Assembly: GCA_965603825.1 (NCBI GenBank)
Contig: CBFDEM010000032.1
Span: 558,001-622,000 of the forward strand
Reading direction: 5' to 3'
DNA: 64,000 nucleotides
Source: Blepharisma stoltei ATCC 30299
Lineage: Eukaryota > Protista > Ciliophora
In this document: piece after piece, positions 2,906 to 50,509 of the stretch
Numbering within the stretch: the stretch's first letter is position 1
How the letters are laid out: every line of letters starts with the position of its first letter
Notes under the pieces: model-generated
Databases searched by the model: none
What the model was told of the DNA's origin: nothing
The model's input: the letters and a program-made list of their open reading frames with translations, nothing else
Program-made: the position numbers and the translations under genes

Positions 2906-3568
2906 GTAATGATAAATTTAAAGATAAAGTAATTTCTACTTATCACTATATAATTTGCTGCTCTTAATTGCAATAATAATTATACCAAACATTTAATCAA
3001 CATACTGGCATATATTCAAAAAGGAATTAATCAAACCAATTCAATATTTTAAAATTATGATAATTCTTGTGTCTGCAAAAGCAGCTATCATCAATGCTAA
3101 TGGGGCTCGCCTCTGAAAAATTATTTTAAGCTATGTATCTTTTATAAGCAAGACTGAGCAGGTGAAGGTAGTATAAGAATAGTACTCATTTTATAAAAAA
3201 TAATTTATAAATTTATACAAGAATTTTTATACTTTCTATGGTAGAATTCTCATAATAATTTTAATTAATTATTATTTTTGGCCAAATAAAATTTCTCAAT
3301 TCAATTGATCGCAGGCAGATCTCATGGCGAAATATCTCCTTTCCGAGAAAGTATATCTGCTCTGTATTTCTTTTATTCTAGATTTTGCCATATGCATCAA
3401 TGAATCATGTTTATTTATTAAATATCTATAACTAACGAATATTAAATCACATATCATATTAATATAATACCAAAAATCATTATCACAATTACAAAAATAG
3501 CTCACATTGAGAATTAAATATTTTAAAATCCTAAGATATGATTTACTGATAAACTTATTATATATCTA

Positions 3569-10498: not shown

Positions 10499-11560
10499 TT
10501 AACTTTTAACGGTATCTCTCATTATTGGAAACTCTAAGCCATCAATCAAGCAAGTAAAATCAACTAAATTGAAGTGAATAAATCCTTCGTTTTCATCACT
10601 TAAATCCAAGGTATTTTTCCCTAGAAGCCAAGCTTGATCAAGCAGAAAAGATTTATTTTGGCATAATGTTTCTCAAACCTTATGCCTTTTCATGATTTTT
10701 CACGCAGGCTCTGCCATAATTGTATTTACCCTTTTAATTTTATTCGCATTTCCTCCATCAATTTCTTTCCAATTTTCAAAATTAACTCTTTTATATTTAT
10801 TTCCCACTCTAATTCTGACATCAGAAAACCCAGCATTATACGAAGATTCGATAACTCCTGAATTTTCTGCATATTCAATTCATTCGTTTTCTTGATTTTT
10901 CCACGCCCAGTAAATTCTATTGTCATTTCTCAAAACTTTATTTTGACTTCTTGTTCCCTTATCACGATTATTTTTAAAGATTCTTTTTTTATCTAAATTC
11001 TTAATATGTTTTCCAACCAAATTTATGATATTTTCGTTTTGTTTCTGAATTTCTTGTTTCTTGATTTCTTCAATTTCAGCAATCCTCTTTTCTTCTTCAA
11101 GTTTTTGAATACTATCTATAGCTGCCATAGCTTTGGCGGCTTCTTGCATTTTAGCTTGTTCTAGCTCTTTTTTGTGTTCAAGTTCTATTTCTTTTTGCCT
11201 TTTTTCAAGCCACAAAGCCATTTCAAGCTTTCCTTGGCATCGAGCTGTCTCAATTTCTGCAGCCATTTTTCTTTCTGATTCTGCTTTTGATCGATTTATT
11301 TCTGACATGCTTTTTTCCTTTTCAGATAAAATTTTTTTTCTTTCTTCTATGAGAGATATCATAGCAAATGCTGGGCATAAGTTGCTGACGTCTGCAATTT
11401 TGTTGTCCTGAGGACATCTAGCTTGGTTCTTTTTTTCTTTTCCTTTTAGCTGTCCAAGACAGAATCCGCATAATGCATGGCCGCAAGAAAGAATATATGG
11501 CTTATTTCGTTCTGAATACTCCTCAAAGCAGATGCAGCACTCAGTTATTGGATTATCCAT
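10499..11560 (-). CDS. RING finger + coiled coil + tandem WWE-like domain E3 ligase, 353 aa
   Basis: N-terminal CCIC...CGHALCGFC...CPQD. Reading TGA (10880, 10700, 10673) as Trp extends the ORF to TAA at 10499: YWAWKNQENEWIEY..NSGVIESSY...KRVNFENWKE...IKRV, then PAWKIMKRHKVWETL...LLDQAW...FNLVDF...IMR. Confidence 0.78.
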
Positions 11561-11655
11561 ATTATTAATAACATTTATATCAGAAAAATTCTTTTAAGCA
11601 ATCATGCATTGACCATAATTTCATGAAATTATTATTTTAGAGTTATGTTCGTAAG

Positions 11656-12855
11656 CTACTCCAGATCTTTTCCTTCCTTAATCCATTGCGTCTTTACTCC
11701 ATTTTTCCATATTCCGTATCTTGTTTCAAATTTATTCTTGTTTTTAACTGGGAATGTCAAATGTCCTTTTCCATCTTGTTTCCCATTTCTCCACTCCCCA
11801 TCATAAATTTTCCCATCAGGCCAACTGAAAACTCCACGTCCGTGCTTCTCATCATTTGCGTACTCTCCATCATATTTCCTTCCATCAGGCCACGTAAAGA
11901 CTCCACTCCCATGCATTTTATTTGCCTTCCATGCTCCCTTATATTCTTTGCCATCATTCCAAACATAGTGCCCGTACCCTTGCATATCGTTATCTCTGAA
12001 TTCTCCTTCATAATAGCTTCCATTTTGCAAAGTAAACACTCCTTTCCCATGTTTTAATCCATTTTTATAATTTCCTTTATAACTCCAGTCTTCTGTTTCT
12101 TCTTTTCCTTCTCCATGCTGTACACCATTTTTGAAGTTGCCTTCATATTTGGATCCATCATAGCGATAGAGAGCTCCTTTTCCATTAAGCTTGCCTCCTT
12201 TGAAATCTCCTTGATATAAATCTCCTTCTGCCGTAATTAGACGCCCATCTCCACATCTTATGTTATTTACGAAGTATCCTACATATTTAGACCCATCTGC
12301 TTCAATTTCAATGCCTTTTCCATGCTTTTCTCCGTCTTCATTCCATTCGCCTTCATAGATGGTTTCATCATTAAGAATATAAGCTTGGTGGGATGTGACT
12401 TGTCGATTCTCATTAGAGCTAGTTTCTGGGGAAAAGCTTCCCCATTGTTTTTCTACTTTTTTAACATTAGATGATACCTTGCTGGAGAGGGAGCCGTTGT
12501 AGGCTTCGTAAACAGTTTCTGGGTTAAAACTTTTGATAACTTGATGGATTTCTTTCATGGCTGATAACTCTTTTCTATCCAGATAGCCTCTAGCTGCACT
12601 CTGAATTCCTGTATATTCGTGCTTTGTTTCTTGATTTTTGAGTTTTTTATCAGCTTTGCTTTTAGTTGCACTCTGTTTTTCAGTATAGTCAAGTTTTGTT
12701 TCATGATTTGGGAGTTGGACTTCAACAACTACTTCAGGCTTGTCATTCTCTTGAGCGGATTCTTGAACTAGTGCTGATCTCTTGGATTCATGCATTGTCA
12801 TCTCATCTCTATTGAGTTTAGGATCTTCTCTCAAGCAGGAACAGTCAGCACCCAT
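11656..12855 (-). CDS. MORN-repeat protein with IQ-like motif, predicted N-acylated
   Basis: Many YxGxW/FxxGxxHGxG repeats; IQSAARGYLDRK; MGADCSC N-terminus. Confidence 0.92.
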   Translation of the reverse strand: MGADCSCLREDPKLNRDEMTMHESKRSALVQESAQENDKPEVVVEVQLPNHETKLDYTEKQSATKSKADKKLKNQETKHEYTGIQSAARGYLDRKELSAMKEIHQVIKSFNPETVYEAYNGSLSSKVSSNVKKVEKQWGSFSPETSSNENRQVTSHQAYILNDETIYEGEWNEDGEKHGKGIEIEADGSKYVGYFVNNIRCGDGRLITAEGDLYQGDFKGGKLNGKGALYRYDGSKYEGNFKNGVQHGEGKEETEDWSYKGNYKNGLKHGKGVFTLQNGSYYEGEFRDNDMQGYGHYVWNDGKEYKGAWKANKMHGSGVFTWPDGRKYDGEYANDEKHGRGVFSWPDGKIYDGEWRNGKQDGKGHLTFPVKNKNKFETRYGIWKNGVKTQWIKEGKDLE

Positions 12856-20799: not shown

Positions 20800-21616
20800 C
20801 TTTATATTGGCATATAATTAATTAAGCAATTTTGAATGTATTATAATTATAGAATATACAATAAATTATCAAAAAATCGGTATGAGTTTTTAAACAAAAA
20901 ATTAGCTTTAACCTTGCTAAGAGCCTCATTTCAAATAGCTTATTCTTCTAAGATTTTTTAAAAAAATTAATTGGTATGCTAAACTTGTTCCTATCAAATT
21001 GAAGATATTTTCATTTGTCTTTATATTTAAAAATTAATATTTAAATCTAAATCTTCGAAATCTAAAATTTTACGTTTTAAAATTTAAATTTTTGTCTGTA
21101 CATTTTAGATTAAAAGGGGAAAAAATGAAAACACAAAATTGACAAATTCAAAATTTATCGCTTTATTTTTTATAATCTTTTATTAGATTATCAAAAGATC
21201 ATTAGCTTATTCCTTTATATTGCGATTAGCAAATATTAACTATGATTATAAATTTAGAATTAAACTATTATTATGCATTCTTTATGCTTAAAAATAAAGC
21301 TTATAATTATCTCTTATTTAGAAGCGATTCTCTTTTATTATAGCTTCACCATAATTTTTTAACCTCATTTCTTCCTTTTTATTAGTGAGAAATTGGATCT
21401 TCATGCTCCTTAAAGCATTTCTAATCTCGCATTAAGATTTATACCCTTTGATATTAATTTCACTTAAGCTTGCGTTTTGGAAATTTAGCACTTAAAAATT
21501 TTGGTCTACAAAGTATGCAAACCAAGTAATACCTGGCAAATTTTTTAAAATAAGCTGCTTTAAATATTTTATATCAAAAGTTAATCAAACTACTTGTTAA
21601 ATGTTAGTTTCTAAAC

Positions 21617-22291
21617 ATGTTGAATAAATTAATGTGGATATTGTTAGTTGTCGCAGGCGTAGCACTAGCTGACCCAATACCTCCTCAGTGGCCTAACACT
21701 TTTACCCAAGTATTTAACGAAACTTTTGCTACAGGCAGCTATGGAAACCAAACCACAACTGGAACTTTATATTATGACTGGACCACCAAAAGCACTCGCA
21801 TCGACAGAGCTAATGGAAGGTATGATGCATTTTGTGGGCTAAATGGGTTCAAAATCCTTGTTGATGGCCCATGCTCACATATTGTCGTCAATGGAAACAG
21901 ATATCTCTATTATCCTAAAGACCACTATTGTTGCTATTGCTGCAATTCAGCACAAGGATGTGGATCACTAAATCCTACTTGGATGGACAATGGAACATTT
22001 TTAGGGACTGCTCCTCACAACGGAGTGAATGCTTATGGCTGGCTTAGAACTCTTCAACAGGACAGATATTATTATGAAACAGCTGCAACTCAGCCAAGCG
22101 CAAGAGTCATGCTTAGTATTTACGAAATGGGTGGAGATTTCAAAGATTTCCATGCTATTACTTACAGCGTTCCATCTGGTATTTTTGACCTTCCTAAGGA
22201 GTGCAATATTAAGCTAAAGTGCCCAGAAACTTCGGTTTGTTCACAGCTAGGTGAAACAGAATCTGAAGAAGAAAGACCAGTCTTTTTTTAA
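21617..22291 (+). CDS. Secreted Cys-rich protein, ependymin-related/LolA-fold-like, copy 1
   Basis: Signal peptide; PPQWPNTF...GTLYYDW....RID...CCYCC...FDLPKEC. Confidence 0.65.
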   Translation: MLNKLMWILLVVAGVALADPIPPQWPNTFTQVFNETFATGSYGNQTTTGTLYYDWTTKSTRIDRANGRYDAFCGLNGFKILVDGPCSHIVVNGNRYLYYPKDHYCCYCCNSAQGCGSLNPTWMDNGTFLGTAPHNGVNAYGWLRTLQQDRYYYETAATQPSARVMLSIYEMGGDFKDFHAITYSVPSGIFDLPKECNIKLKCPETSVCSQLGETESEEERPVFF

Positions 22292-22890
22292 TAGCTAAGA
22301 TATTTCAATAATTAGTATTGCAGTCTAAAGTTCAAATAAAGTTATTATCTAGTTGCCTAAAGATAATATTGTTTTTTTATTTGTATAGATTTAAAAATAA
22401 GGAGACGATATCCCTTTAAATATCAGCTTTTCATGCAGAATATGATACAAAATCATCAGATTAATTTAATTTAACAGTAGCCTACTTTGAATATTCATTT
22501 CTGATGCCAAAGCTTATATATGATTTAGTGTATCGGAGGTATATAGAGCAGAAAACATGACATCTAATGTGATCTTTGGTATAATTGTTATAAACTTAAT
22601 AAAATTAAATATATATGCAAAATTTATCAATTTTTAGATAATATGATTTATTATACTTTAAACTCTCAGCACACATATTTCATTGAAATTAAGTTCTAAT
22701 ATTTGTTAACCCTTGATTTATTTTTATCTTTCTCATATTAATGACAAATAATTGACTATTACCTTCAGGTCATTTTTAGTATAAAATATTCAATAATGCT
22801 CTTCCTTCATAATTAAACAATAATTATACTGAATAATTATATGCTAAATCATAAATTAAATTTACATAATAATCATTGTTGAATAAATAA

Positions 22891-23550
22891 ATGTGGACAT
22901 TGCTCATTGTAACTGGTTTAGCACTTGCTGACCCATTACCTCCTCAATGGCCTAACACTTTCACCCAATCCTTCAACGAAACCTTTATATCCACAAGCTA
23001 TGGAAATCACACCACAAATGGAGTTTATTACTATGACTATACAAGCCAAAGCACACGTATAGACAGAGATAATGGAAGATATGATGCGTTCTGTGGATTA
23101 AATGGGTTCAAAATTCTAGTTGACGGTCCATGCAACCAGTTCGCAGTTGGTGGAAACAGATATATTCATTATCCTAAAGACCATTATTGCTGCTTTTGTT
23201 GCAATTATCAACAAGGATGCGGACCATTGTATCCAACTTGGATGGATAATTCAACATTTTTAGGAACTACTATGCACAATGGAGTTCAAGCTTATGCTTG
23301 GGATAAAATGGGAAACCAGCCAAATTATTATTATGAAACAGTGGCAACTCAGCCAAGTCAAAGAGTAATGCTTGGAATTTATGAAATGCCTGACGACTTT
23401 AAAGACTTCCATAGCATAAGCTACAGTGTCCCTGCTGGAACTTTTGATTTGCCAAAAGAATGCTCTGTTAAGATAGTTTGTCCGGAAACCTCAGTTTGTA
23501 CGCAAATAAGAGGTTCTGGTTTACAAAGTGTTCTTAAAAACATAATTTAA
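22891..23550 (+). CDS. Secreted Cys-rich protein, tandem paralog copy 2
   Basis: Colinear with 21617-22291 (NGRYDAFCGLNGFKILVDGPC identical). Confidence 0.65.
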   Translation: MWTLLIVTGLALADPLPPQWPNTFTQSFNETFISTSYGNHTTNGVYYYDYTSQSTRIDRDNGRYDAFCGLNGFKILVDGPCNQFAVGGNRYIHYPKDHYCCFCCNYQQGCGPLYPTWMDNSTFLGTTMHNGVQAYAWDKMGNQPNYYYETVATQPSQRVMLGIYEMPDDFKDFHSISYSVPAGTFDLPKECSVKIVCPETSVCTQIRGSGLQSVLKNII

Positions 23551-28705: not shown

Positions 28706-28767
28706 TTTCACTGTAAAGTTGTTAATATATACATTTTAAATTGATTTAATGAAAGATCAAGAAATAA

Positions 28768-29885
28768 TTAGTTAGCTGGATGGAATGTTTGTATAAAGCT
28801 TTTTGTCTCAAGGACAGCTCTATAATTTGGATAATGAGGGGCTCCATTAGCTAAAGAGTTAACTGCAGCTTGAGTATCAGCGAATTTATAAGTTTCAACC
28901 CTTGGATAAACATTGTTAATCCTTACAAATTCAAGCATTTGTTCTGTTTCAAGTCTGGAACCTGTTAAACTTGACTGAACTTTTAATTGATTTAAAAGTA
29001 TAGGAACAGATTAAAGTTCAAATTTTCATTTGAACTTGGAGCTCCACATAAGTGAAGAACGCCTCTTGGTCTAAGCAATGAGCAGCACTGAGTAATATCA
29101 TAACTTGTGGCAGTATTAATGATATAATCTAAGCTTCCCATTGCATTTTTCATCTGGGCCTCATCTCTCAAGTTAATAAAATGATGAGCTCCAAACTCTC
29201 TAGCATCAGCTTGCTTATTATTGCTCGTAGAAATTGCTGTAACCTCAGTTCCCATAGAATTTGCAAACTTAATGGCCAGATGCCCTAAGCCTCCAATTCC
29301 AATCACTCCAACTCTCATTCCAGAAACTACGTCTCGATGAAGTGGAGCAAACACTGTCAACCCTGCGCAAAACATTGGTGCTGCCTCTCCAGGAAAACTC
29401 TCATCGAGCTTAAAGAAAAAGCTTCCTTTGGCTTGAAATGATGTTGCATAACCTCCAAAATGAGGATCATATGTAGTCACCTTTTTAGGGCACAGATTAT
29501 CGAATCCTGTTCGGCACTGGAGACAGCTATCATATTCTTCGCAGCAGTCTCGAATAGTCCCAAACCCTACTTTATCGCCAGGCTGAAATTTTGATACTTT
29601 TTCCCCAACTTTATCAACAACTCCAACTATTTCGTGCCCAGGAACAAGAGGAAAGCAGCCACCAGGGAACCAGGCCTGAGTTGACATAAAAATATCAGTG
29701 TGGCAGCAGCCAGCATGAGTTACATTGATTCTAACTTCATTGTCAAGAAGGGCTGGATGACGAAAAGGAAGAGGCGAAACTGTTGTCCCTGGATTCATAA
29801 ATGCCATCGCAACTCCATGGGCGTCACCTATAGCACATGGCTGGGGTGCTCTGTCTCCTAAGACTTCAAAAGTATTTCTTTGCAT
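28768..29885 (-). pseudogene. Zn-dependent alcohol dehydrogenase (CAD/YjgB-like) copy 1 with a 1-nt frameshift (pseudogene or assembly error)
   Basis: GCCHTD, GHE, GIGGLG. Span is 1118 nt versus 1119 nt for the paralog at 31082-32200. One base is missing near 29004-29007, and the C-terminus (NQLKVQS...HYPNYRAVLE...PAN*) continues in another frame. Confidence 0.85.
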
Positions 29886-30494
29886 ATTTTTATTATTAAA
29901 TTCATTGAGCTATATTAAATGGCATACTTTTGCGTTAATTAATGGCTGATTTAACATCAGATTAATAAGCTTCAGAAAAATTAAAATCTTAGAAAACCTA
30001 TGCTAGAAATCATTTGTTATCCTATTTTTTCAATTATTAGATGCAACAGCTTTCAATCTAATTTTTGCTAAGGATGCATTTAGTTTGGAAATCATTTAAT
30101 ATATCTTATTGGCCGAAATTAAGCTTAAAGAGCATTTTAGCATAATTAGAAATGCATCAAAGGTAAAATAAGTGCTGAAAGTTATTATCTGTTTCAAGTT
30201 TTTCACATATAATCTTTTGTTGTCACAAAAACGTTATTTTTGACCATTAAGAGGTTAACATCTTCTGAAATATTCAGAATGGTTAAAATGCCAAGTGAAG
30301 TTATGTCCCCTATGCCCAGTTGAGTTGATCTCTGACTAAAAGAAGGTGGATCCAATTCGTCGAATTTAATTATTAAATCTTGAATTAATGAAAATTTATG
30401 TGTTCTTAATAATACACATTTTTGCTTAGAAATAATCATTTTGTTTATTAATTATTCATCCTCTATAAGCATTTAAATTAGAGGAAAATAAGCG

Positions 30495-30810
30495 CTTTCA
30501 TAGAGCTTTTTTCCCTAGAGCAACTCTATAATTTGGATAATGAGTAGCAGCTTGAACTTCAGTAAATATATAAATTTAGCTCTTAGATAATATTATTAAT
30601 TTTTATGAAGTTATGCATTCTCTCCATTTCAGTCTAGAGCTCATAGAGCTGAACTGAGCTCTTAACGATTTCAAAGGATCGGAAACATGCTAAAATTCAA
30701 ATTTTTATTTGAGTTTGGAACTCCGCATAGATTAAGAGTTCTTCTAACCTCAGTGACGAGCAGCATTGAGAAATATCATATATTATAGCAGTATTGATAA
30801 TGCATAAGCA
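30495..30810 (-). pseudogene. Decayed 3' fragment of a fourth alcohol dehydrogenase copy
   Basis: ctctataatttggataatgag and gagcagcattgagaaatatcata...gcagtattgat match the 3' ends of the neighbouring ADH genes, with deletions. Confidence 0.75.
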
Positions 30811-31081
30811 TTCAATAGAAATATTACTAATCAATCTATTTAACGAATTAGCAATATTTAATAACTCATGTACCCGAAACTACCTATTTCTCATTAATAT
30901 AATTTAAATTATATATGTAAATTATTAATAATTTTGGCTTTTTATCTTTAGGTCCCAAAATCATTATTCTTATTAATCTTAATCTCATCCTTAAAATTTT
31001 AATTTTAGTTTCATTTTTATAGCTAATAATATAAAGCAAAAAGAGATCTTTTTTTGGTTTAATGCATTCTTAGTAAGAGAA

Positions 31082-32200
31082 TTAATTAGCTGGGGTGAAT
31101 GTCTCCATAAAGCTCCTCATCTCAAGAACAGCTCTGTAGTTCGGATAGTGAGGATTTCCGTCTGCCAACGAGTTAACAGCAGCTTGAGTATCAGCAAATG
31201 CATAAGTTTCAGTTCTTGGATAAATATTATGAATTTTTACGAACTCAAGCATTTCCTCTCCTTCTAGTCTAGATCCTACTGGGTTTGCTTGAACTCTAAG
31301 TTGATTTAAAAGAATTGGAAGCAGACTAAAGTTAACATTTTCTTTTGCATCTGGGAATCCACAAAGATTTAGAGTTCCCATCGGTTTGAGAAGTGAACAG
31401 CACTGAGCAATATCATAGCTTGTTGCAGTATTAATGATATAGTCTAAGCTTCCTATAGCATTCTTCATTTGAGTCTCATCTCTTAAGTTCACAAAATGAT
31501 GTGCTCCAAACTCCGTAGCATCAGCTTGCTTGTTATTACTTGTAGAAATTGCTGTAACTTCTGCTCCCATGCAATTGGCAAATTTTAAAGCTAAGTGTCC
31601 TAATCCTCCTATTCCGACAACTCCAACTTTCATTCCAGCAACCACATCTCGATGAAGGGGCGGGAAAACAGTCATTCCTGCACAGAATAGTGGTGCTGCT
31701 TGACCTGGGAAACTTTCGTCAAGTTTATAGAAAAAGCTTCCCTTTGCTTGAAATGATGTGGCATAGCCTCCAAAATGAGGATCATAGGTTGTAGCTCTTT
31801 TTGAGCAAAAGTTTTCATGCCCAGTTCTGCATTGCATGCAGGTTTCAAAGTTTTCACAAGCGTCTCTCCATACTCCAAAGCCAACTTTATCACCAGGTTG
31901 GACTTTTGTAACTTTTTCGCCAACTTTGTCCACTATTCCAACAATTTCGTGGCCTGGAACAAGAGGGAAATTTCCATTTGGAAACCAAGCTTGAGTTGCC
32001 ATAAAAATATCGCTATGACAGCATCCTGCATGAGTTACATTGATTCTAACTTCATTGTCAAGAAGGGTTGGATGGCGAAATGGAAGAGGAGAAACTGTTA
32101 ATCCTGGGTTCATAAATGCCATCGCCACTCCATGAGCATCTCCTAGAGCACAAGGCTGAGGAGCTCTGTCTCCTAAGGTCTCAAAAGTATTTCTTGCCAT
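31082..32200 (-). CDS. Zn-dependent alcohol dehydrogenase (CAD/YjgB-like) copy 2
   Basis: GCCHSD, GHE, structural Zn Cys cluster, GIGGLG. Confidence 0.93.
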   Translation of the reverse strand: MARNTFETLGDRAPQPCALGDAHGVAMAFMNPGLTVSPLPFRHPTLLDNEVRINVTHAGCCHSDIFMATQAWFPNGNFPLVPGHEIVGIVDKVGEKVTKVQPGDKVGFGVWRDACENFETCMQCRTGHENFCSKRATTYDPHFGGYATSFQAKGSFFYKLDESFPGQAAPLFCAGMTVFPPLHRDVVAGMKVGVVGIGGLGHLALKFANCMGAEVTAISTSNNKQADATEFGAHHFVNLRDETQMKNAIGSLDYIINTATSYDIAQCCSLLKPMGTLNLCGFPDAKENVNFSLLPILLNQLRVQANPVGSRLEGEEMLEFVKIHNIYPRTETYAFADTQAAVNSLADGNPHYPNYRAVLEMRSFMETFTPAN

Positions 32201-32486
32201 AATTTATTATTAAATTCCTTAAATTCTACCAAATAAATGTTTGATATTTTATTAGTAAATTTATTGGGAGCTATTTAAATAATATTTCTTGTCACTGATT
32301 TTATTATTAAAATCATTGAATGCTATTAAGCAATATAACTATGTGAATTTTAAAATGGCTATTACCAGCATTTGAAGATTATAAGTGCTTTATTCATCAT
32401 TTTGATATGGCTATTTCCTATATATTTCAAAAAGAAGCTAAATAAATAATTGTAAATAGCTAATGCTTTACAAATAAAATAAAAAA

Positions 32487-33596
32487 TTAATTAGCAGGCG
32501 AGAAAGTCTTCATAAAGCTTCCCATTTCTAGAACAGCTCTGTAGTTTGGATAATGAGGATTTCCATGAGCTAAAGAATTAATTGCGCTCTGTGTATCAGC
32601 AAAGTTGTAAACCTCAACTACTGGGTATATGCTATGGAGTCTAACAAAATTCAGCATCCTATCTACTTCTCTTTCAGACCCTGTAAGATTTGACTGCACT
32701 CTCAAATCATTTGTTAAAAGCTGAAATAAATTAAAATGCAAATCTGTGCCTGCCTCTGGTGCTCCACACAAGTTAAGGATTCCTTTTGGTTTTAATAATC
32801 CGCAGCATTGTTCAATGCTAAAGCTAGTTGCAGTATTGATTATATAATTCAAGCTTCTTGAAGCACTTTTTACTTGATTTTCATCTCTTAAGTTAAGAAA
32901 ATGATGAGCTCCTAGATTTCTCGCATCTGCTTCTTTGCTTTGGCTGCTTGAAATAGCAGTAACTTCAGCTCCCATCGCTTTTGCGAATTTTAAAGCTAAA
33001 TGACCTAGGCCTCCTATCCCAACGACTCCAACCTTCATTCCTGGTCTAACGTCATTAATAAGAGGAGGGAATACCGTAATTCCTGCACAAAACAAAGGAG
33101 CAGCCTCTCCTGGAAAATCATCATCAAGCTTATGGCAGAATTTACTTTTAGCTTGAAAAGATGTGGCATATCCACCAAATTCTGGATCATAGGTATGCTT
33201 CCGTTTTAGGCAATGGTTTTCAAGGCCTGTTTTGCATTCTTCGCAAGTTTCGCAGCAATCTCTTCTTGTGCCAAATCCTATTTTATCACCAGGCTGTAAA
33301 TGTGTAACTTTTTCTCCAACTTTTTCTACAATGCCAATGAACTCGTGGCCTGGAACAAGGGGAAAGGAACCATTTTTTGACCATGCTTGGGTTGCGTAAA
33401 AGACATCAGTGTGGCAGCATCCTGCGTGGGTAACGTTTACTCTTACTTCGTTATCAAGAAGTTCAGGATGGCGGAAAGGTAAAGGGGTTACTGTCGTGCC
33501 AGGCTCAAGAAATGCCATTGCAACTCCATGTGCATCTCCAAGATTGCATGGCTGTGGAGCTCGGCTGCCTAAAAGTTCATAAGAATTTCTTACCAT
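32487..33596 (-). CDS. Zn-dependent alcohol dehydrogenase copy 3
   Basis: GCCHTD, GHE, CCETCEEC....ENHC, GIGGLG. Confidence 0.93.
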   Translation of the reverse strand: MVRNSYELLGSRAPQPCNLGDAHGVAMAFLEPGTTVTPLPFRHPELLDNEVRVNVTHAGCCHTDVFYATQAWSKNGSFPLVPGHEFIGIVEKVGEKVTHLQPGDKIGFGTRRDCCETCEECKTGLENHCLKRKHTYDPEFGGYATSFQAKSKFCHKLDDDFPGEAAPLFCAGITVFPPLINDVRPGMKVGVVGIGGLGHLALKFAKAMGAEVTAISSSQSKEADARNLGAHHFLNLRDENQVKSASRSLNYIINTATSFSIEQCCGLLKPKGILNLCGAPEAGTDLHFNLFQLLTNDLRVQSNLTGSEREVDRMLNFVRLHSIYPVVEVYNFADTQSAINSLAHGNPHYPNYRAVLEMGSFMKTFSPAN

Positions 33597-33887
33597 TATT
33601 TTTAATTATAAATTAGATGGCTTATATATTTGGCCCAAATGGAGATATTGCTGCATTTATTTATATCTATTTCCTAATCTTCTTATATCAAACATTCATT
33701 CTATTTATAATTATTGGCTTAGTTTGATCAATCTACTATAATTGTCAAAAATTACTTAAATATAAGTCATTTTCAATCATAATATGACAATTTGCAGGAA
33801 TAGTACGAATTTCTGAATCTTTTCACTCCTCCCTTTCGATTTCTTATTTTTATAGCAATAAAACAGACAGTCAACCTCAATACATAA

Positions 33888-40690: not shown

Positions 40691-42079
40691 TTAATCAACT
40701 CCAGGCTCTCTTTTATTTTTTCTTGCAAGTTTCGCTTCTCTTGCTTCATTTGCTAAAAATTCTTGAATATAATCTTCATAAAACGTCCTGAGATGAAAAG
40801 TCTGTCGATTTATATCTCTTATATCATCTACCTTAGCCAGCGCTTTTAAATAGTCAATAAGGTTAAAAAGCTCTTTATCATAATAATCGTCCATTCATGA
40901 TATAATCGGAACTCCATTATCTAGCTGATTTCCAAATGAGTAAGCTGAATTATCAATAATTACCATATCTTTAAGTTTTCTGTTTGCAAATATCCGAAGA
41001 TCTTTCATATAAATACCTTCGACATTTACACAGTTATTTCTATATAAGCGATGATGAATGAGCTCTTTGCTAGGGTCTAGGTAATCTAATACAACGTCTG
41101 CATAACATTGGTGGCTGGCTGTGAATACAATAATTTCATATTCTTTATTGATTTCTCTTAAACACTCAAGGGTGTAAGGCCTAACATTAATTCCTGCATC
41201 TATTGCTTCTCCAGTAGGAAATATAATAGGTAAAACTACATCGCAGTCTTCTATTCCATCACAGCAATGAACCAGTGTTTCATCTAAATCAAAAATCGCT
41301 GTCTTTTTATTTTCCCAGCCTGGCCTTTTTGGCAAATTTAGTCTTTTTTCTCTGATTTGGCTGATTTCTACAGGTGGCAAATTTCTAATTAATTTTAATG
41401 ATTGAAAAGTTTGGAAGAGGTGCTCTTTATAATAAGCTTCACTTTTTGCTTCAATTTCAGCTTCAGTTAATTGCTTTTTAATTCTTTTAGCTGACGCAGG
41501 CTTTTGTACCTGCGTGACATAGATATTTAAACTTGGGGATGACCCTGTTTCTGGCTTAATTTCAATATTTTGTACTGCTGCTTTATTAGTGACAGTTTTA
41601 GGTCTTGGCGGCAGCCCAGGAGAATTTTTGGATCCTGTAGGAGTTGAAGGCTTTTGGCTTGATTTTCTTGGAGATGTTCCTTTGGCACTTAATAAATTAC
41701 TTTTTACTGCGAAAACAGGTGGCGCTTTATGCGCTGATTTTTTGACTTTTGAAGGAAAATTGAAGGAGCTATCGTTTGAGGTGGGAGTATTCCCTTCGCT
41801 ATGGATTTGTTTAGGCTGCTGTTGTTTTGAAACAGGCGCTTTATGTTTTGGAGTCCCTGATGTTGTAGGTATTTTGCTTGTATTTAGAGTTCCCCTTGAA
41901 TGAGAAGGGGAATTTTTATTTAAAGTAAAAATTTGATTTGATGCTGTGTCGTCGTCATTTTCTGGAACATCTATTGTTAGCTTTGAGGCTTTGGCTAGAA
42001 TATTGCCTCCTTTTTGAATAGATGAGAAATATCTAGGGTCTGGGTGGGCCTTAGGCGATGCCATATTATTACTAATCAT
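40691..42079 (-). CDS. FCP1-homology/SCP CTD small phosphatase (CTDSPL2-like)
   Basis: DLDETLVH, FTAS, KDLRIF, IIDNS. TGA 40895 supplies the conserved Trp in PIISW-MDD..DKEL. Confidence 0.92.
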
Positions 42080-42319
42080 GATATCCTATATTTTATTGAA
42101 ACTGAGAAAATAAAATTAATAGAAATGAACAAGCTTTTTATTTAAGGTTTTAATTTATTGTCAATCTAGAGATATGATTTTATTAATTATTATAAAATTA
42201 AGATATTTCTGATATTTTTCAGGTTTATATCAATTATAGAATTTTATCTTGAATAGCCCTGCAAGGCACGCTTTCTGGATGAACCAAAAGGTATTTACAT
42301 TTGAAAGCTTAGAAAAAAC

Positions 42320-42869
42320 AATTCTATTAAAGATTTTTAAATAAAAATGAAATCGTATTTTTATTAATTACTGCAATATATGGAAGGAATTCTCCTATGC
42401 TTGATCTTCGAGCATCTCTCAAAGTCCCTATATGAACCTCCAATAATTATTGTAGCTGAGCAGGGGTCTACTGTAACAGCAGTAATGAAGTCTATGCAAT
42501 TTGTTTAACAAGTCTCCCATTTACAGGCGATCTTGTTGAAGGAATATTTAGCAGGCTTCCAAAACTTTTGATTTTGGCTATCGTGATTGATGATAATTCC
42601 CAAACTCAAGCTTTAACTTTTTCCAGCGATCTTTGCACATTGAATTCTTTGAATCAGCTGGAGCTTCAGAAATTAAATATAAATACAGCGTTTCCTTCAC
42701 AAATTCTCATCTGCGAATTTGCCTGATTTCTCTAATATGACCAAACTAGAGACGCTAGATTTGAATGGAAATAAGTACAGGGAACATTCCTCAATCTATA
42801 GAATTTAGTAACTTTGCAATTATTCAGTAATTCACTTAGTGGAAGTCATGCAGCAAGAGTGGGCTATAA
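42320..42869 (+). pseudogene. Truncated signal-peptide + LRRNT + LRR gene, left arm of inverted repeat
   Basis: ATG 42347 (frameshifted at codon 2-3); ...IW(TGA)TSNNYCSW(TGA)AGVYC...LETLDLNGNK...LQLFSNSLSG; has deletions; reverse complement of the right arm. Confidence 0.85.
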
Positions 42870-43089
42870 CCAGTCATAAGTTATAATTAATTATTTAGGT
42901 CATAAATATATTGCTCTTCTTAAAATCTGCAAAGATTAATAACTCGTTTAAAATGGAGTGATTTCTCTAAAGGGGCTCATTAATCTAAGTATATTTAAAT
43001 CATAAAAGAGAATCAACAAATATATAAGCTTTATATCAAATTTTGATGGAACAACCAAAAATAGAATCAATTTTAATTAATTCAATTGA

Positions 43090-46000
43090 TTAAGATTTTT
43101 TAAATCTCTTTTCTGGCTTTTGTACTATATTTCTTTTTCTTTTTCTACTATTTCCTTCCTCTTCTTTTTCTCGTAACTTATTACGTATGATTTCCAAGCC
43201 GGAGTCTTTCTCTTTGATTTTTTGAATTAATCTTTCTATGTTTTCGTCACCAAACTCAATTCTTTTTTCATTTGTTAAAGTAACATCATTTTCTCGACAC
43301 AATATTGAACTCTCTGGAAATATTTTTCCTTTTGAAGTACTAAAATGATTATTTATATCTAATGCAACTTTAATGCTGAATTGGTGCTCGTCTATATGAA
43401 TCTCTCATTTTCCATCAACAATATTTCTATAAAATACAATTCCGCGAATTATCATTCGTTGGAGATAGTCATAATTTGGATTTAAGACAACTTCTATGTA
43501 CTTTTTAGCGCATATTTGTCAAAGCGCATCATGAGCCTTTTCACAGACCACAGAAATTTCAGCTTCTCCTAACTTTTTATACTCATGAATTATAGCAACA
43601 TCCCCCTTTCCACGCTTTGAAATGAAAATCCCATCAAGCTTTTTTTTGAATTTGTTAGATATCTCAAAACCGATAAAATATTTTGGATCATTTGATGTTA
43701 ATAGTGGTATTGCTCCTGCTCCTCCTACGATAGTTTGAAAAAACTTTTCACTTTTATCAGTTCGTTCGCTTATTTTATCAAGGATTTCTTCTTGTATCGC
43801 TCTTGAAACTTCATCTTTATGCTCTAAATTTTCAACAAATTTGTCTAACCAATCATAAGAATTAATTTGATTTTCTCCTGTTATCTTTAGTCATACATTA
43901 AGCATTTTGGGGTAAAAATATTTTCTCACTTCTTTATTAGGAACTACCAAAACATTGATTTCTTTCTTATTTTCTAATAGAGTCAAGTATCCTGCATGAA
44001 GTAGCAGTAAATAAGGATTATTTGCTGTCCAAGGTTGATTAATAATCGGGTTTTTCAATTCAAGATACCCAGCTTTCATTATATCAAATAATTCATTATC
44101 AAATTTAAGAGCTTCGAATATCGAAGTTAGAAATCTACCATCATTATCAAACTCATTTCAATATTGACTGAGAGGTCATTCGTTATTATCAACAGCAAGC
44201 TTCAAGCAGCTTATTATCGATCGAGAGTTGTATATTTTATGACCCCCTACATTATATCCATTATATCAGTCTTTTATTAATGTTTTCTGATCCATTAAAT
44301 GACGGTCTGAATATTCTATTAAGTGCTTATTAAGCAGCCATTCAACATCCGCTTCAGTAAATCCAAAGAATTTTGAATATGATTTTGTCGAAATAGTATA
44401 AGGAAAAAAAGCATCTGGACTAAATATTTCAAGCAAAGTGTCATAATAATATCCAGCTACAATTAATTTTTTAATGCAATGATCTGTATGATCGACGAGC
44501 TGTTGCATTGTTTGCCATAAGAGCAGCTCAATTTCATTCTGGTTATCTTCGGTGAGTCCTCTATTAAAATTTTTATCATATCCATCAATAATAACAATAA
44601 CAGCTTGCCTATGAATTATATGAAGCATATGAGCCAAATTTTCCAGTGCTATATTTATATCTATTTGTGAGCTGAATTGCCGATAAGTTCTAAACAGCTT
44701 AATTTCAGCGGGCAATATTATTTCATTACGATCAATAATATGTTCCAGCACCTCAACATCTCGATTTTTATAATTCATTATTTCTACTCCGTATTGCTCT
44801 ATTATTTTCTCTAAGTACTGACAATAGGAAGAAATATGCTCTTTATACACACGTGAAATTTCTGTTTGAATTTTTTGTAAAAGGATTTCCGGAGACATTA
44901 ATCCTCGTAAAAATATCTTAACTAAATCAGGAAAAGCAAAAAAAATAGTCGGAATACACCCAGCAAATTGTCTATAATGTCCATTATCAGCATTCATTAT
45001 TTCAAAGCATTTTTTACTGTCCAAATTATTTAAATCAGTGTTATTTTTTCCTCCTGTAAATAAATACAAATTTGCGAATTGCCCATTTTCATCTTGCTCT
45101 GGATTTAAAAATGTCTTTAGCATAGTTAAATTCAATGTTTTGCCCCAACCTCTTGGTCTCAAAATTGCAAAATTTCGACGCGTGTCATCTAAAATTGCTT
45201 TAATGAAAATTGTTTTATCCACATAGACAGCCTTATCATCAATCATGAGTTTAAAATTCCTATTGCTAGTGCTAAAATTATAAGAACTTTGGACTCTAAT
45301 TACTGATTGTGGTGTCGTAGGAGACTCTTTTAGCTTTTTATTCTTGGAAATTGGTGTTTGGAAGATATTGTGGCAGGGTATTGGGCTAATATTTAAAGAT
45401 TGGATAAATTTATGCGCCATATCTTTTTTGCCTTTTTCTTTAAAATCCCTTAATATGCACAATTGATTCATGCTCAATTTGCTTAATATAATACCCGCAT
45501 CAACTTCCGATATTACCCAATCTTCCATATCTCTTTTAAGCTCATTTGAAATTGAGTCTTTTATCCATTCAAGCCAATTCAACTCGAAATCTCACGAGCC
45601 TATTTCACAATTTTGTGTCAGGATTTGAATAATACTTTGTTGTTCAAATAGCGCTGTAATTTTATAAGCTGATTTCAAATCAAACTGAGAAAATGAATCT
45701 AAAAAGGCAGATTTGCCTGTTGAAATCAGCATAACTATATTGTACATTGATAATAGGCAGCTTTGGAGGCAATGCTTATACATTTTAATGCTATGATGAT
45801 CGAATATCCAATAAGTTTTGAAAAAGCCTCCAAAGGTAGCTGATTGTCCATCAGGCTCATTATAAGAAATTTTTGTACAAAGCAGGTATTTAAGGAGAGG
45901 AGGCAAACTATAATTATTTCCTGATGAATCAATCGAAAAAACTAGCTCAGAAGGGTTATATAGATGTTCTCCGTTAATATTTATGTAGTCCTTGGGGATA

Positions 46001-46359
46001 ACTACCATTGTTTGCCATATGTATTTTTGCTCTATTTGTTCATCTGCAAGATTAGAGTTTTTACTTACATCTAATTTTCAATAGGCTACAATAGGCCTCT
46101 TAAGTTTTTCACCATCATTTGCAATCGCCTCTTCGATTTTCTTTGTATAAGATAACACACCAATTACTTCATCATCATCGATGGCGGGAGAATTAATCAA
46201 AGTCAACTCTGAGCCTATTATATGAATTTTGTCTTGGTAAATACGCTTAAGGGCCTCTTGAATGCCGAAGGCAGATGCATAGCATTTTGTTTTGCTTAAA
46301 CGATCATAAGTATCAAGATTGCTAAAAACGGTGTAAAGATCCTGTTTTAAGCTTATCAT
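43090..46359 (-). CDS. AAA-ATPase-like (PF09820-type) + PD-(D/E)XK nuclease (PDDEXK_9/DUF1703-type) protein with ~370-aa N-terminal extension, 1089 aa
   Basis: Five ORF-track pieces in one frame joined by 8 TGA=Trp; I translated the gaps and found no TAA/TAG. Motifs YVDKT.FI, RPRGWGKTLNLTML, IIDGYD, FFGFTEADV, DWYNGY...IYNSRSI, QYW, LLHAGYLT, VPNKEV, LDGIF...IIHEYK...ALWQICAKKY, RGIVF. Confidence 0.88.
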
Positions 46360-46396
46360 ATTTTTATTAATCAAACTCAATTTATAAGAATATTTC

Positions 46397-47767
46397 TTAT
46401 AACCACACTTGCTACATGACTTCCACTAAGTGAATTACTGAATAATTGCAAAATTACTAAATTTGGTAAATTTGCTGTAGATTGAGAAATGCTCCCTGTA
46501 CTTATTTCCATTCAAATCTAGCGTCTCCAGGTTGGTCATATTAAGAAATCAGGCAAAATCCTGTCAATCCACAATAAGCCACATGGAGAATTTTTAACTT
46601 TGTGCAGCTGAGAATTTGTAAAGGAAACGCTGTATTTATATTTAATTTCTGAAGCTCCAGCTGATTCAAAGAATTCAATGTGCAAAGATCGCTGGGAAGA
46701 GTTAAAGCTTGAGCCTGGGAATTATCATCAATCATGGTAGCCAAAATCAAAAGTTTTGGAAGCCTGCTAAATATTCTTTCAGCAAGATCGCCTGTAAATG
46801 GGAGATGTGTTAAACAAATTGCATAGACTTCATTACTGCTATTACAGTAGACCCTTGCTTAGCCACAATAATTATTGGAGGTTCATATAGGGTTAGGTTA
46901 GGTTTTACTTAAGCAGCTACTGCTGCCGAATGAGCCTTATGGCTCACTTTTCTCCTGCACTTCCACAACTTTTCTGCTCTTTTTATCAGTTCCATAGATT
47001 TCCCTACTTTCATCCCATTCGCATCCCTGTCAATTTCATCATTTTCTTTGGTCATTTTGTTGTTTTGTGGTTTTGGGTGCTTTTAGAATTTTTTGGGTTC
47101 TTTTTGGAATATTGGGCAATTTCGCGCTTTATGGGTTCTTTTGGTGCCTTTTGGGTTTTTTAGATTTTTGGTAGACTCTTGGTTTTTTAAGCTTTACGAT
47201 AGTTAGCAGCATTTTTTTCCCTTGCATCTTCTCCTCTAGCTTAACTGCTCTTAACTCAGGGTTTTTGATCCCTACTTCTTCTCCCACTATCTTGATTGGT
47301 ACAGTGGTCAGCATTGCTTCCCCATCATCCAGGATCATCCCATCCATTTTTGCAAAGAAAAGAACGATTCTTTCAAATTTTTCATCTTTGCTTGGTAATT
47401 CTCCCAATAAATCTTCATCTTCTTCCTCTTCTTCTTGACTTTCCACAGTTTCCTCATCACTTCCCTCGTCCAGTTCTCCCTCCGCTTCTAGAAGTCTGAT
47501 TTCTTCTTCCACATCTCTACTTCAGCTAAAGCTTCATCAAGATCTCCATCTTCATACGGGTAGCCACTATCTAAACAATATTCGTCCCAAGAGTCATGGC
47601 AACTTGAGTACAAATACGCCATATTCATGGCAAAAAATAAAAGTGGAGGCTCATATAGGGACTTTGAGAGATGCTCGAAGATCAAGCATAGGAGAATTGC
47701 TTGCATATATTGCAGTGATTAATAAAAATACGATTTTCATTTTTATTTAAAAATCTTTAATATAATT
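46397..47767 (-). pseudogene. Truncated signal-peptide + LRRNT + LRR gene, right arm of inverted repeat, interrupted by an insertion at 46893-47643
   Basis: ATG 47740: MKIVFLLITAIYAS...; resumes after the insertion with an in-frame TAA where the left copy has TGA(Trp); LPSDLCTLNSLNQLEL...LKILHVAYCGLTG; truncated at the same point as the left arm. Confidence 0.85.
46893..47643 (-). mobile_element. 751-bp retroposed-type insertion (non-autonomous non-LTR element or retrocopy) with 17-bp TSD and (CCTAA)2 3' tail
   Basis: Flanked by tggaggttcatataggg (46876-46892) and tggaggctcatataggg (47644-47660). The left arm has a single copy (42426-42442). Contains a frameshifted acidic-then-basic ORF ending ...EKLWKCRRK...AA* GTAAAA CCTAACCTAA. 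Confidence 0.82.
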
Positions 47768-47825
47768 TAAATTTGCAATAGTTTTTAATATTGATAATTA
47801 GAGTTACTGGTTATTTAAGAATATT

Positions 47826-48420
47826 TTAAGCCAGATTCAGGTCTTTGATAAAATCATTATCTTCTTGCAGATATGTGTAAGCTTCTTTGAATGTGAATCT
47901 TTTTGCTGGATCCATTAAGAGCATTTTTTCTAGCACTTTTCTTAGTCAGTTTCATTTTACTTCATTAAGAATTTCACACATTTTCTCTTGATAAATAATT
48001 TGATTGATTCCTTTTACTCTTTTACTTATGCTAATCTTCCAAAATACTAGTCCTAATGAATAAACATATGCTTTTTCCAGGTTATATTTAAACTTCACAC
48101 ATGTTTGAGAATTTTTATTTAACTCTGAAGTAAGTTCTGGAGGCACATGCGTGCCTTTAATTAAGTACTCATTTTCTTCAGAAATTGATGAAACAACTTC
48201 AGAAATCCCAAAATCAATTAGTTTATACTTAGCATCCTCAGAGACTAAGATATTTTGAGGCTTTATATCTTTATGCACAATATTTAAGCTGTATAATTCT
48301 ACAAATCCGCTTAATAATTTATTTGCAATTTTAGCTATGGTAGAACTAGAATTTTCACCAAAGACAAATTTGTCTATGCAAGCTACTAGAGCAGTATTCC
48401 ATAACTATGCAAAACTCATA
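47826..48420 (-). pseudogene. Decayed Ser/Thr kinase C-lobe
   Basis: HKDIKPQN, DFG, MLLMDPAKR. The hinge CIVMEYC is in a different frame, the activation segment is shortened (GTHVPPE), D of DVYSLG is mutated to Y, and I found no N-lobe. Confidence 0.78.
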
Positions 48421-48549
48421 CTGTCTTTCTTATGATTTTTTGTCGAATTTATGAAACTTTAAAAAAAATAGATAATTAAGCAAAGCTAAACCAGCAAGAA
48501 ATTTTGTTTCTTTTTTGTATTTCAAGTAAGTTTTTTCTTTCTATAAGTA

Positions 48550-49350
48550 TTAACACTTTCTGATCTATTAGATGACGGTCTGAATATTTTATTAAGTGCT
48601 TATTAAGCAGCCATTCGACATCCGCTTCAGTAAATCTAAAAATTATGAATATGATTTATCGAAATATTCTAAGGAAAAAAGCACCTGAATTAGATGCATC
48701 AACCAAAGCTCATAATAATATCCAGCTACAATTAATTTTTATGCGATAATCGGTATGATCGATGAGGTTTTGCATTATTTTCCATAAGTGCATCTTTATT
48801 TCTTCCTGGTTCTTTTGGATGAGTCCTCTATTAAAATTTTTATCATATCCATCAATAATAACAAAAGCAGCTTGCCCATGAGTTAGATGAAGCATATGAG
48901 CCAAATTTCTCAGTGCTGTAGTTATATTTATTTGTGAGCTGAATTTCAGTAGGCAATATTATTTCATTACGATCAATAATATATTCCAGCACCTCAACAT
49001 CTCGATTTTTATAATTCATTTTTTCTACTCCGTATTGCTCTATTATTTTCTCTAAGTACTGACAATAGGTGGAAATGTGCTCTTGATACACTTCTGAAAT
49101 TTCTACTTGAATTGTTTCAAAAAGGATTTCCGGAGACATTATTCCTTGTAAAAACATATTAACAAAATCAGGAAAAGTAAACAAAATAGTCAGAATACAC
49201 CCAGCAAATTGTCTATAATGTCCATTATCAGCATTTATTATTTCAAAGCATTTTTTACTGTCCAAATTATTTAAATCAGTGTTATTTTTTCCTCCTGTAA
49301 ATAAATACAAATTTGCGAATTGCCCATTTGCATCTTGCTCTGGATTTAAA
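48550..49350 (-). pseudogene. Internal fragment copy of the AAA-ATPase-like gene
   Basis: Closely similar direct copy of about 44277-45109 with deletions and frameshifts; lacks Walker A and the nuclease domain. Confidence 0.9.
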
Positions 49351-49948
49351 TAACTTTAGATTGAATAATTTTATAAGATAGATTTTTCTTATCGGAAAAT
49401 TCACATTTTTATATTAACCCCACTTTAATTGAACCTTGACCTTTTCTTCTGCAGGATCACTGCTCTAGCCCTATGGCGTCTTAATTAATCAACTATTTAG
49501 CTTATTCTTTTTTTATTCTTCTTTTTCTGTCCTTCCTTTATTTTCTTATTTACTATTGAAAGGTTGGAGTTATTAGATATTTATAAACACTTTTTCTTGC
49601 TATCCTAATTTTAAAATAAATTTATTTCTCAAGTCAATTTTTATAAGATTTCAATTATTAAATAATTTTGAGCCTAAAATTATAATGATATTCATATTTA
49701 TCCGAATCATTTTTGTTGAGTTCCTTTACGAAAATCTTCTTCGTAATTGCAATTGTAGGTTAAAATTCAAATTGTGGAATACCATTTATAACTTCCACAA
49801 TATTTCCGAGCTATAACTTGCCATTATAAATTTCCATCAAGTTTGTTTTTCTTATATTATATAGTCTATGAGTAAAATCGAAAATTACAAAATTAAATTC
49901 TGTACGAACACTGACTCCATTTTAACCAGTAAAAAATAATTATAACTT

Positions 49949-50509
49949 ATGAAGTTAGAGAGTGTAATGCATGCAGACTTCACTGAAAAGTCTTCTGTTG
50001 ACACATTAACTGACAACCATGACCTATCAATAGTAATAAATACCTTGGAAGTAAATTGCTTCCGCTGTAAGCTCTGTCAAAAAATATTTTCTGAGGCCAC
50101 GGCGCTCAGAAAGCACTTACTTGAAGAGATGGAGCTCGACAACGAAGGCATTGGCTTCTTGAATTTAGAATTAGGACTCGATTTATCTGATGATATTGAG
50201 ACCCATATACAAAAATCTACAGCCAATAATGCCAAAAACAGCATAGTTTGCCCTATATGTTCCAAGATTTGCAAAAGTAAAAAGGGTCTGGAACAGCACA
50301 AAGGTAAGACTCATATACATAAAAGGAAAAGGTGTGTATGCAAAATATGTGACAAAAAGTATGAAAATAAATATGCTTTAAGGTTTCATATAATACAAGT
50401 CCATGAAAAAGCAACAAGAGTGGTATGTGAAATTTGTGGATCAGTCATATATAATAAATATATGCTTGCTGCACATATAGAGAGTGTTCATTCAAAAACT
50501 ATGGTATAA
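49949..50509 (+). CDS. C2H2 zinc-finger protein
   Basis: CPICSK...GLEQHKGKTH, CKICDK...ALRFHIIQVH, CEICG..YNKYML..H. Confidence 0.88.
   Translation: MKLESVMHADFTEKSSVDTLTDNHDLSIVINTLEVNCFRCKLCQKIFSEATALRKHLLEEMELDNEGIGFLNLELGLDLSDDIETHIQKSTANNAKNSIVCPICSKICKSKKGLEQHKGKTHIHKRKRCVCKICDKKYENKYALRFHIIQVHEKATRVVCEICGSVIYNKYMLAAHIESVHSKTMV

Follow-up and report, generated by a model that had tools for sequence, protein, structure and literature searches.

A 7-kb mosaic insertion around an ATPase-nuclease gene in the macronuclear genome of Blepharisma stoltei is probably a duplication scar copied from one donor neighbourhood

Analysis of a 64,000-nucleotide stretch of the Blepharisma stoltei ATCC 30299 macronuclear assembly (41.46 Mb, 64 contigs), referred to here as the window (C32:558001-622000; positions without a contig name are window positions), revealed an intact open reading frame (ORF) for an ATPase-nuclease protein, P0152, enclosed by inverted repeats made from a truncated leucine-rich repeat (LRR) gene. 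The region between 42320 and 49350, which includes this gene and both repeats, is probably a 7-kb mosaic insertion copied from a single neighbourhood of the type found on contig C10, and is therefore more readily read as the scar of a duplication than as a mobile cassette. All of its pieces could be traced to C10:550.5-557.6 kb, in two orientations, with the exception of a 198-bp spacer, fillers of ~16 nucleotides (nt) and a 768-bp insert acquired later. The original prediction for this DNA had offered two explanations, a transposase-less mobile unit with captured arms and a duplication scar; it was the second that agreed with the data, the pieces being copies of one donor neighbourhood in mixed orientation and of broadly similar age. 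The published somatic genome of this strain uses UGA as Trp and has tiny introns and short untranslated regions (UTRs) (PMC9942806). In the window, the long ORFs were open only when TGA was taken as a sense codon. The pieces of the block and the genes beside it are:

40898-42079, minus strand: NIF-phosphatase gene, the left flanking gene
42080-42319: left remnant of the original divergent intergenic region, adjoining the NIF-phosphatase gene
42320-42880, plus strand: left arm, the decayed first 186 codons of a gene for a small secreted LRR protein, beginning 26 nt upstream of the ATG; the last ~15-20 nt are filler common to the right arm
42881-43078: spacer of 198 bp that separates the left arm from the ORF unit on its 3′ side
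43079-46399, minus strand: ORF unit, with the coding sequence at 43090-46359 and a 91.4% identical copy at C10:550568-553876
46400-46892, minus strand: inner part of the right arm, ~16 nt of junction filler and then LRR codons ~27-186; it keeps the 43-44 nt and 11 nt lost from the left arm
46893-47660, minus strand: secondary insertion in the right arm, 768 bp, with a 17-nt direct repeat (one mismatch) at its flanks
47661-47767, minus strand: outer part of the right arm, the LRR start (ATG and signal-peptide codons) and 26 nt upstream; the inverted repeat ends here
47768-48550, minus strand: kinase/intergenic piece, comprising DNA upstream of the LRR gene and the 3′ ~250 codons of a kinase gene, 93.5% identical to C10:556188-556987
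48548-49350, minus strand: ORF fragment, a frame-broken piece (~0.8 kb) of the ATPase-nuclease gene, codons ~438-717
49351-49948: right remnant of the original intergenic region, adjoining the zinc-finger gene
49949-50506, plus strand: C2H2 zinc-finger gene, the right flanking gene

The donor was located by searching the whole assembly with the arm sequence, which was present in three copies only, namely the two arms and C10:556988-557574. On C10 this sequence forms the beginning of an intact gene of 245 codons, the product of which opens like a signal peptide and contains a C.W.GV.C motif and LRRs (Pfam LRR families); an intact protein-kinase gene lies directly upstream of it on the same strand. 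The parent of the arms is a small secreted LRR protein without a kinase or transmembrane part, the kinase being a separate upstream gene; the arms had been attributed to a truncated LRR-receptor gene, of which the LRR origin holds and the receptor does not. Approximately 3 kb from the LRR/kinase pair, C10:550568-553876 carried a full-length copy of the ORF unit, such that the ORF copy, the kinase gene and the LRR gene are all found within 7 kb. This ORF copy contained no stop codons and was frame-broken by three 1-nt deletions. The ends of the ORF unit were common to C32 and C10, from -40 bp relative to the ATG to ~+14 bp past the stop codon, and the flanks beyond these points were unrelated. 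Homology to C10 ran unbroken from 47644 past 47767 to 48550, ~780 bp beyond the inverted repeat, and was followed by the ORF fragment, the two pieces sharing a 3-nt overlap (TAT, 48548-48550) at their junction; the homology on the right side had been expected to end at the arm edge. The three ORF copies (window, fragment and C10) were 89-92% identical to each other in a roughly star-like pattern. No other genome copy of the 198-bp spacer was found, nor any match to it in the donor region.

The site of insertion was recognised from a second contig, as the window between 31 and 58 kb is collinear with C44:376-405 kb, the two having opposite orientations. The homologues of the NIF-phosphatase and zinc-finger genes are ~0.66 kb apart on C44 compared to 7.87 kb in the window, and 40 nt at 42177-42216 still matched the C44 intergenic region. 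This spacing and the match in the remnant indicate that the DNA from 42320 to 49350 (7,031 bp) was inserted where two divergent genes had been separated by a short intergenic region. The outer intergenic remnants otherwise had no informative match in the donor or the other regions compared. The insertion reaches 1.6 kb past the right arm, and the arms are therefore not its boundaries. No target-site duplication was seen at 42320/49350, in agreement with the earlier failure to see one outside the arms; the block contained no transposase and the ORF was its sole intact gene. The identities of the pieces, taken as a measure of their ages, were 94.7-95.0% for the LRR pieces, 93.5% for the kinase piece and 91.4% for the ORF (synonymous divergence, dS, of 0.11). 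Gene by gene, the two collinear regions shared ~55-95% amino acid identity, and this collinear block, which represents an old segmental or whole-genome duplication, offers an outgroup by which insertions in one or the other copy can be recognised.

The inverted repeat was checked in three ways, by repeat search, gapped alignment and blastn. Positions 42320-42861 (plus strand) and 47767-46404 (minus strand) were reverse complements, detected as four collinear inverted pairs in the repeat search and joined by the gapped alignment, and the main piece of the arm pair gave an E value of 3e-161 with blastn. The arms were identical at 496 of the 524 sites present in both arms and the parent gene (94.7%, substitutions only). 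This is far beyond chance and replaces the ~90% previously estimated by eye; the arm pair was the sole large inverted repeat within the 64-kb window. Both arms broke off at the same parent position (~codon 186 of 245), followed by ~15 nt of common non-LRR junction sequence, and both carried frame-breaking indels, which confirmed that they are decayed and stop at the same point. The left arm had private losses of 1 nt just after the ATG, 44 nt (43-44) and 11 nt, the latter two being retained by the right arm, which had two 1-nt deletions of its own. A further deletion of 2 nt was found in both arms and was absent from the intact parent gene. The common 2-nt deletion, truncation point and filler indicate that both arms derive from one truncated, already frameshifted precursor, and a separate truncation of each arm was rejected on these grounds. 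The arms and the parent were equidistant (94.7%, 94.7% and 95.0%, with 13, 13 and 13 private changes), from which it follows that the precursor was split into two arms soon after the truncated copy arose.

These differences also bear on whether the structure could be an assembly artefact, arising either from a chimeric read that folded back or from the collapse of a repeat. The arms produced by fold-back chimeras are nearly identical, whereas here 5% of the sites carried substitutions, indels of 44, 11 and 1 nt were present and one arm had an insertion of 768 bp. The gene model also exists as a complete 1089-amino acid protein in the public set, and an artefact is extremely improbable.

The proximity of the arms to the gene is in favour of a cassette, in which an arm-ORF-arm unit, or a defence island module, would move without a transposase on its captured arms. 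The right arm abuts the 5′ side of the ORF unit within ~20 nt and the left arm is <200 bp from its 3′ side, so that inverted repeats of ~0.55 kb enclose a 3.3-kb gene as they would in foldback or miniature inverted-repeat transposable elements (MITEs) or in cassettes bounded by terminal inverted repeats. The pairing of the two protein domains has been tied to selfish elements in the literature (Medea; cif genes on mobile elements), and one distant homologue pair, on the protist contig L053, has inverted flanks. However, only a single arm-ORF-arm unit was present in the 41.5-Mb assembly, with no further arm copies beyond the C10 parent, and the closest paralogue (C10, 91%) had unrelated flanks outside -40/+14. 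The arms are fragments of a host gene, they have diverged by 5% with large private indels, the inserted block contains other donor fragments in addition to the arms and ends elsewhere, and the flanks of L053 are intact, unrelated genes. A cassette is accordingly very improbable, and the search of the assembly that had been proposed to reveal one yielded the intact parent LRR gene (C10) and a paralogous empty site (C44) but no second unit. The block is thereby removed as a candidate new mobile or defence cassette.

Taken as a duplication scar and read along the minus strand, the block would consist of five pieces: the ATPase-nuclease fragment (codons 438-717); the kinase 3′ end with intergenic DNA and LRR codons 1-186; the complete ATPase-nuclease gene (-40 to +14); the 198-bp filler; and the same truncated LRR piece for a second time, inverted. 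It may have formed in one or a few closely spaced events, by error-prone break repair with template switching of the kind termed microhomology-mediated break-induced replication (MMBIR) or fork stalling and template switching (FoSTeS) with one fold-back, or alternatively by end joining that captured several fragments. The inverted repeat would have arisen as a by-product and would not act as the termini of an element; the complete gene alone would have stayed open while the remaining pieces decayed, and the 768-bp sequence would have been inserted later in the right arm. We infer a single complex event and a repair mechanism of this type, with one junction showing 3-nt microhomology and a filler of ~16 nt at the LRR/ORF junction, and template switching or multi-fragment break repair would be the most economical mechanism.

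Complex segmental duplications with inverted segments are known to arise through replication-based template switching of the FoSTeS/MMBIR type or through fold-back repair. The block resembles these in having short segments from one donor area in mixed orientation and neither a target-site duplication nor a transposase; its segments may also be of similar age, and the 3-nt overlap at one junction and short fillers at others would fit such an origin. It differs from them in that its donor and recipient are on different contigs and one copied gene probably stayed functional, and its mechanism is deduced from the end product. With donor, recipient and paralogous 'empty' site all in one assembly, the block is a well-resolved case, from the somatic genome of a ciliate, of complex duplication between loci.

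Several observations weigh against so simple a history. Divergence was somewhat greater among the ORF copies (dS 0.11; 91.4%) than for the LRR and kinase pieces (93.5-95%), a gap of borderline significance by rough estimate; the ORF looks somewhat older than the rest, and more than one event may have brought the pieces in. The exact donor may be a lost third locus, as the spacer and fillers could not be traced. The ends of the ORF unit are remarkably tight (-40/+14), and 26 nt precede the ATG in the left arm, a pattern that purely random breakpoints would not predict. Finally, the solo copies of the gene on C10 and C54 lie between recent direct repeats and the L053 copies have inverted flanks, which hints at rearrangements clustering around the family.

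The position of these ends raises the question of an origin from RNA, in which copies of the ORF and LRR mRNAs would have been joined as the reverse transcriptase switched templates, and the inverted arm would have resulted from twin priming. Given the tiny UTRs, -40/+14 and a start 26 nt before the ATG are plausible transcript ends, and the 17-nt duplication around the 768-bp insert is what a retroposed sequence might have. The right-hand piece, however, passes unbroken from kinase coding sequence through intergenic DNA into the LRR gene, and a transcript reading through all of these would be required; the ORF 3′ junction lacks an A-rich tail, a target-site duplication was not seen, and the LRR copies end mid-gene on their 3′ side and not at a poly(A) site. 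The C10 parent genes are intronless, so intron loss cannot be scored. Overall, we consider an RNA-mediated origin quite improbable.

Neither the left arm nor the C10 parent contains the 768-bp insert itself, and both keep the empty site. A transposon bounded by terminal inverted repeats was considered for the insert and rejected, as it had no inverted ends of >10 nt. It opens with an ATG-led acidic reading frame and has a tail resembling CCTAA-CCTAA. The ~80 nt at its beginning and the ~125 nt at its end resembled C24:10193-10273 and C44:351725-351848 (85% and 78%, respectively), and its interior was unique.

The apparent clustering of rearrangements was followed through the other members of the family. 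A tblastn search of the B. stoltei assembly with the window ORF revealed at least 8 more copies, full or partial, distributed over five other loci, one of which is the C10 locus. The remaining loci, the members of which on C40, C54 and C58 had 24-44% amino acid identity to the window ORF (tblastn), are:

C40, 659.9-677.4 kb: tandem array
C40, 582 kb: single copy
C54, 811299-814439: single copy, 35% identical
C58: two tandem copies

None of the five other B. stoltei loci had inverted flanks. Metagenomic relatives were compared at six distinct protist loci, of which L052 and L056 are apparently one locus in two samples, while L054 repeats L053; flanking repeats were not found at L052, L055, L056, L057, L058 and L059, i.e. 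at five of the six distinct loci. On L053, a 1070-nt inverted pair (82% identical, 2545-3614 and 11360-12429) brackets two tandem family members in the topology arm> ORF> <arm, the same as in the window. These L053 flanks are two intact paralogous genes with 78% amino acid identity and no known domain. Inverted flanks are therefore not a feature of the family: the original prediction had named the lack of any other paralogue with inverted flanks, together with the lack of an empty allele, as the sign of a one-off duplication, and no other paralogue in the B. stoltei genome had such flanks, with the caveat that the unrelated protist contig L053 has them. The flank gene had a third and more distantly related copy at 235-1212 of L053. 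A conserved partner gene beside family members across species was also considered and rejected, as none of the Blepharisma blocks contained a gene related to the L053 flank gene.

At every B. stoltei family locus except C40:582 kb, the gene or its flanks had been duplicated locally and recently (85-97%), and rearrangements seem to be frequent around the family, all regions examined having been chosen because they hold family members. One explanation would be a rearrangement hot spot promoted by the nuclease, in which the family's PD-(D/E)XK nuclease cuts near its own gene and repair duplicates the gene and its neighbours, leaving a scar that is the footprint of a selfish gene. The local duplications take the form of direct repeats on C10 and C54, arrays on C40 and C58, and the arms and fragment on C32, and the inverted host-gene pair of L053 encloses two tandem copies. 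Additionally, the catalytic residues of the nuclease are intact, its domain is the most constrained part of the protein (ratio of nonsynonymous to synonymous substitution rates, dN/dS, of 0.40) and the tight ORF-unit ends are common to C32 and C10. On the other hand, given how the regions were picked, such duplications carry less weight, and unrelated tandem arrays were also frequent in the 224 kb examined; the flanking repeats vary by locus in sequence, length and orientation, are missing at five of six metagenomic loci and at C40:582 kb, and are accompanied by neither target-site duplications nor conserved ends. We regard this explanation as unlikely. Its broader form, that the family acts in ciliates as a selfish or conflict gene and spreads by self-provoked break-repair copying in which neighbouring host DNA is carried along, with the C32, C10, C54 and L053 brackets as footprints, is doubtful to a slightly greater degree. 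If the clustering of rearrangements were non-random, it would point to nuclease-driven gene spread in eukaryotes.

The direct repeats on C10 (548614-550398 and 553937-555634) are 1.7 kb long, carry a 241-codon gene and lie on either side of the ORF copy. They were 97% identical over 1 kb and 88% over the remainder, are the most alike pair of a local tandem array, and their duplication looks younger than the C10 ORF copy itself. The C54 copy was bracketed by 1.1-kb direct repeats (809349-810447 and 815060-816159) with 92% identity, while other nearby array members had 66-69%.

With the block best explained as a duplication scar, the wider interest lies in the gene, which represents a host-coded, fast-evolving eukaryotic family with a CifB-type domain set at duplication-prone loci. 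The ORF runs on the minus strand from an ATG at 46359 to a TAA at 43092-43090 and contains 1089 codons with 8 in-frame TGA; the intact ORF reported earlier between the arms is thus real, provided that TGA is read as sense. P0152 is a complete 1089-amino acid entry in the public protein set, and its paralogues are likewise public Blepharisma stoltei proteins. It was compared with its relatives using a 14-member family alignment, Pfam, NCBIfam, PADLOC, hhalign, structure models, Foldseek and VIA-align, and the following domains were assigned:

Residues 1-345: putative Ulp1/CE-clan-like domain
Residues ~345-700: AAA-ATPase_like domain, PF09820
Residues ~840-1015: PD-(D/E)XK domain, PDDEXK_9-like

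The ATPase and nuclease domains had both been proposed previously. The first was identified directly by Pfam, with PF09820 matching at E=7.1e-16 (59 bits against a cut-off of 26.1) as the sole Pfam domain found. Its Walker A motif is intact, RPRxWGK[ST] being conserved in the 14-member alignment. The Walker B motif of the family is hhhhDEYD/DDYD, whereas P0152 uniquely has IIDGYD (residues ~590-595; window 44580-44600), with Gly at the second acidic position, the other 13 members having DE or DD at this point; ATP hydrolysis may be impaired in P0152 through this Gly.

The nuclease was invisible to Pfam, with no match to PF08011 even at E<=10, and NCBIfam and PADLOC returned no nuclease family for the C-terminal half; it was supported by profile and model comparison. 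An hhalign comparison of the family profile with the PF08011 domain of P0033, a bacterial-type relative, gave a probability of 95.6% (E=1.2e-8). The model of the C-terminal 176 residues had a mean predicted local distance difference test score (pLDDT) of 87.6, and VIA-align matched it to CinB (Z 8.4, root-mean-square deviation 3.4, 122 aligned) and CidB (Z 7.4), then to EcoRV, McrC, Cas4, MGME1 and the R2 endonuclease. Foldseek matches to the nuclease model were weak and again had the PD-(D/E)XK fold. A sequence-level search of solved structures with the family profile gave no match. The residues D909, E926 and K928 are present, and the C-terminal domain appears to be a divergent homologue of PDDEXK_9, a PD-(D/E)XK nuclease that is apparently active, with its predicted active site intact.

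Residues 1-345 were modelled with a pLDDT of 83, and the best Foldseek matches were poxvirus I7L, OtDUB, ChlaDUB1, SseL and SENP8, at E values of 1e-3 to 0.1 and low template-modelling (TM) scores. The CE-clan motifs HW, DS and QQxxxxDCGWW are intact in the metagenomic relatives P0009 and P0087. P0152 has Ile, Met and Ser at the catalytic positions of His, Gln and Cys, respectively, and most Blepharisma paralogues also lack the Cys; with His and Cys lost, the N-terminal Ulp1-like domain is predicted to be catalytically dead. Across the family, the N-terminal motif is DCGWW in some metagenomic relatives and DSGWW in many, and is lost in the P0152 subgroup.

Comparison of P0152 with the C10 pseudogene copy gave a dN/dS of 0.76 overall, the nuclease domain having the lowest value, and of 1.8 in the linker at residues 701-840 (window 43850-44260), the latter from small counts. 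Against the ORF fragment (window 44275-45109) the value was 1.9, with few synonymous changes. In the 0.8-kb region common to all three copies, the intact gene had 44 private changes compared to 34 and 23 in the dead copies. As the window gene is open and its C10 sister has three frameshifts, the P0152 gene is probably functional and fast-evolving.

The nearest described systems share parts of this architecture. Proteins of the DUF1703 type (PF09820 plus PF08011) are mostly bacterial, occur in Bacteroidota, archaea and symbionts, are expanded and recombining in Cardinium and Rickettsia, and have a copy in the Tribolium Medea element (PMC6387759, PMC3424549); the mainly bacterial distribution of the domain pair and the Medea copy had been stated correctly. 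P0152 resembles them in its PF09820 domain and apparently PDDEXK_9-homologous C-terminus, with D/E/K kept, and in belonging to a multi-copy family that recombines or duplicates within its genome. Unlike them, it is encoded by a nuclear ciliate gene using UGA as Trp, is ~500 amino acids longer with an N-terminal Ulp1-like domain, and has no Pfam match to PF08011 and a Gly in Walker B. CifB proteins consist of an AAA-ATPase-like region and PD-(D/E)XK domains, and CidB also has a Ulp1 deubiquitylase (PMC12445526). P0152 appears to have the same three domain types, and CinB and CidB (PDB 7esz and 7esy) were the two best structural matches of its nuclease model, their Z values being safe for similarity at the level of the fold only. 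It differs in having the Ulp1-like domain first, in the detection of one nuclease domain (residues 700-840 were outside the models) and in the absence of a CifA-like partner gene from the block; with one nuclease domain and no partner gene, P0152 is not a member of the Cif family. PF09820 is also listed for RdrA of RADAR (PMC10952713). P0152 resembles all of these in the domains it contains and in their fold. By analogy with bacterial DUF1703, CifB and RdrA-type proteins, we infer that P0152 may be a nucleoside triphosphate (NTP)-regulated nuclease of the conflict or defence type.

Elsewhere in the window, 21597-23499 and 28759-33614 contained tandem arrays of diverged paralogues (70-78% identity) that are unrelated to the block.

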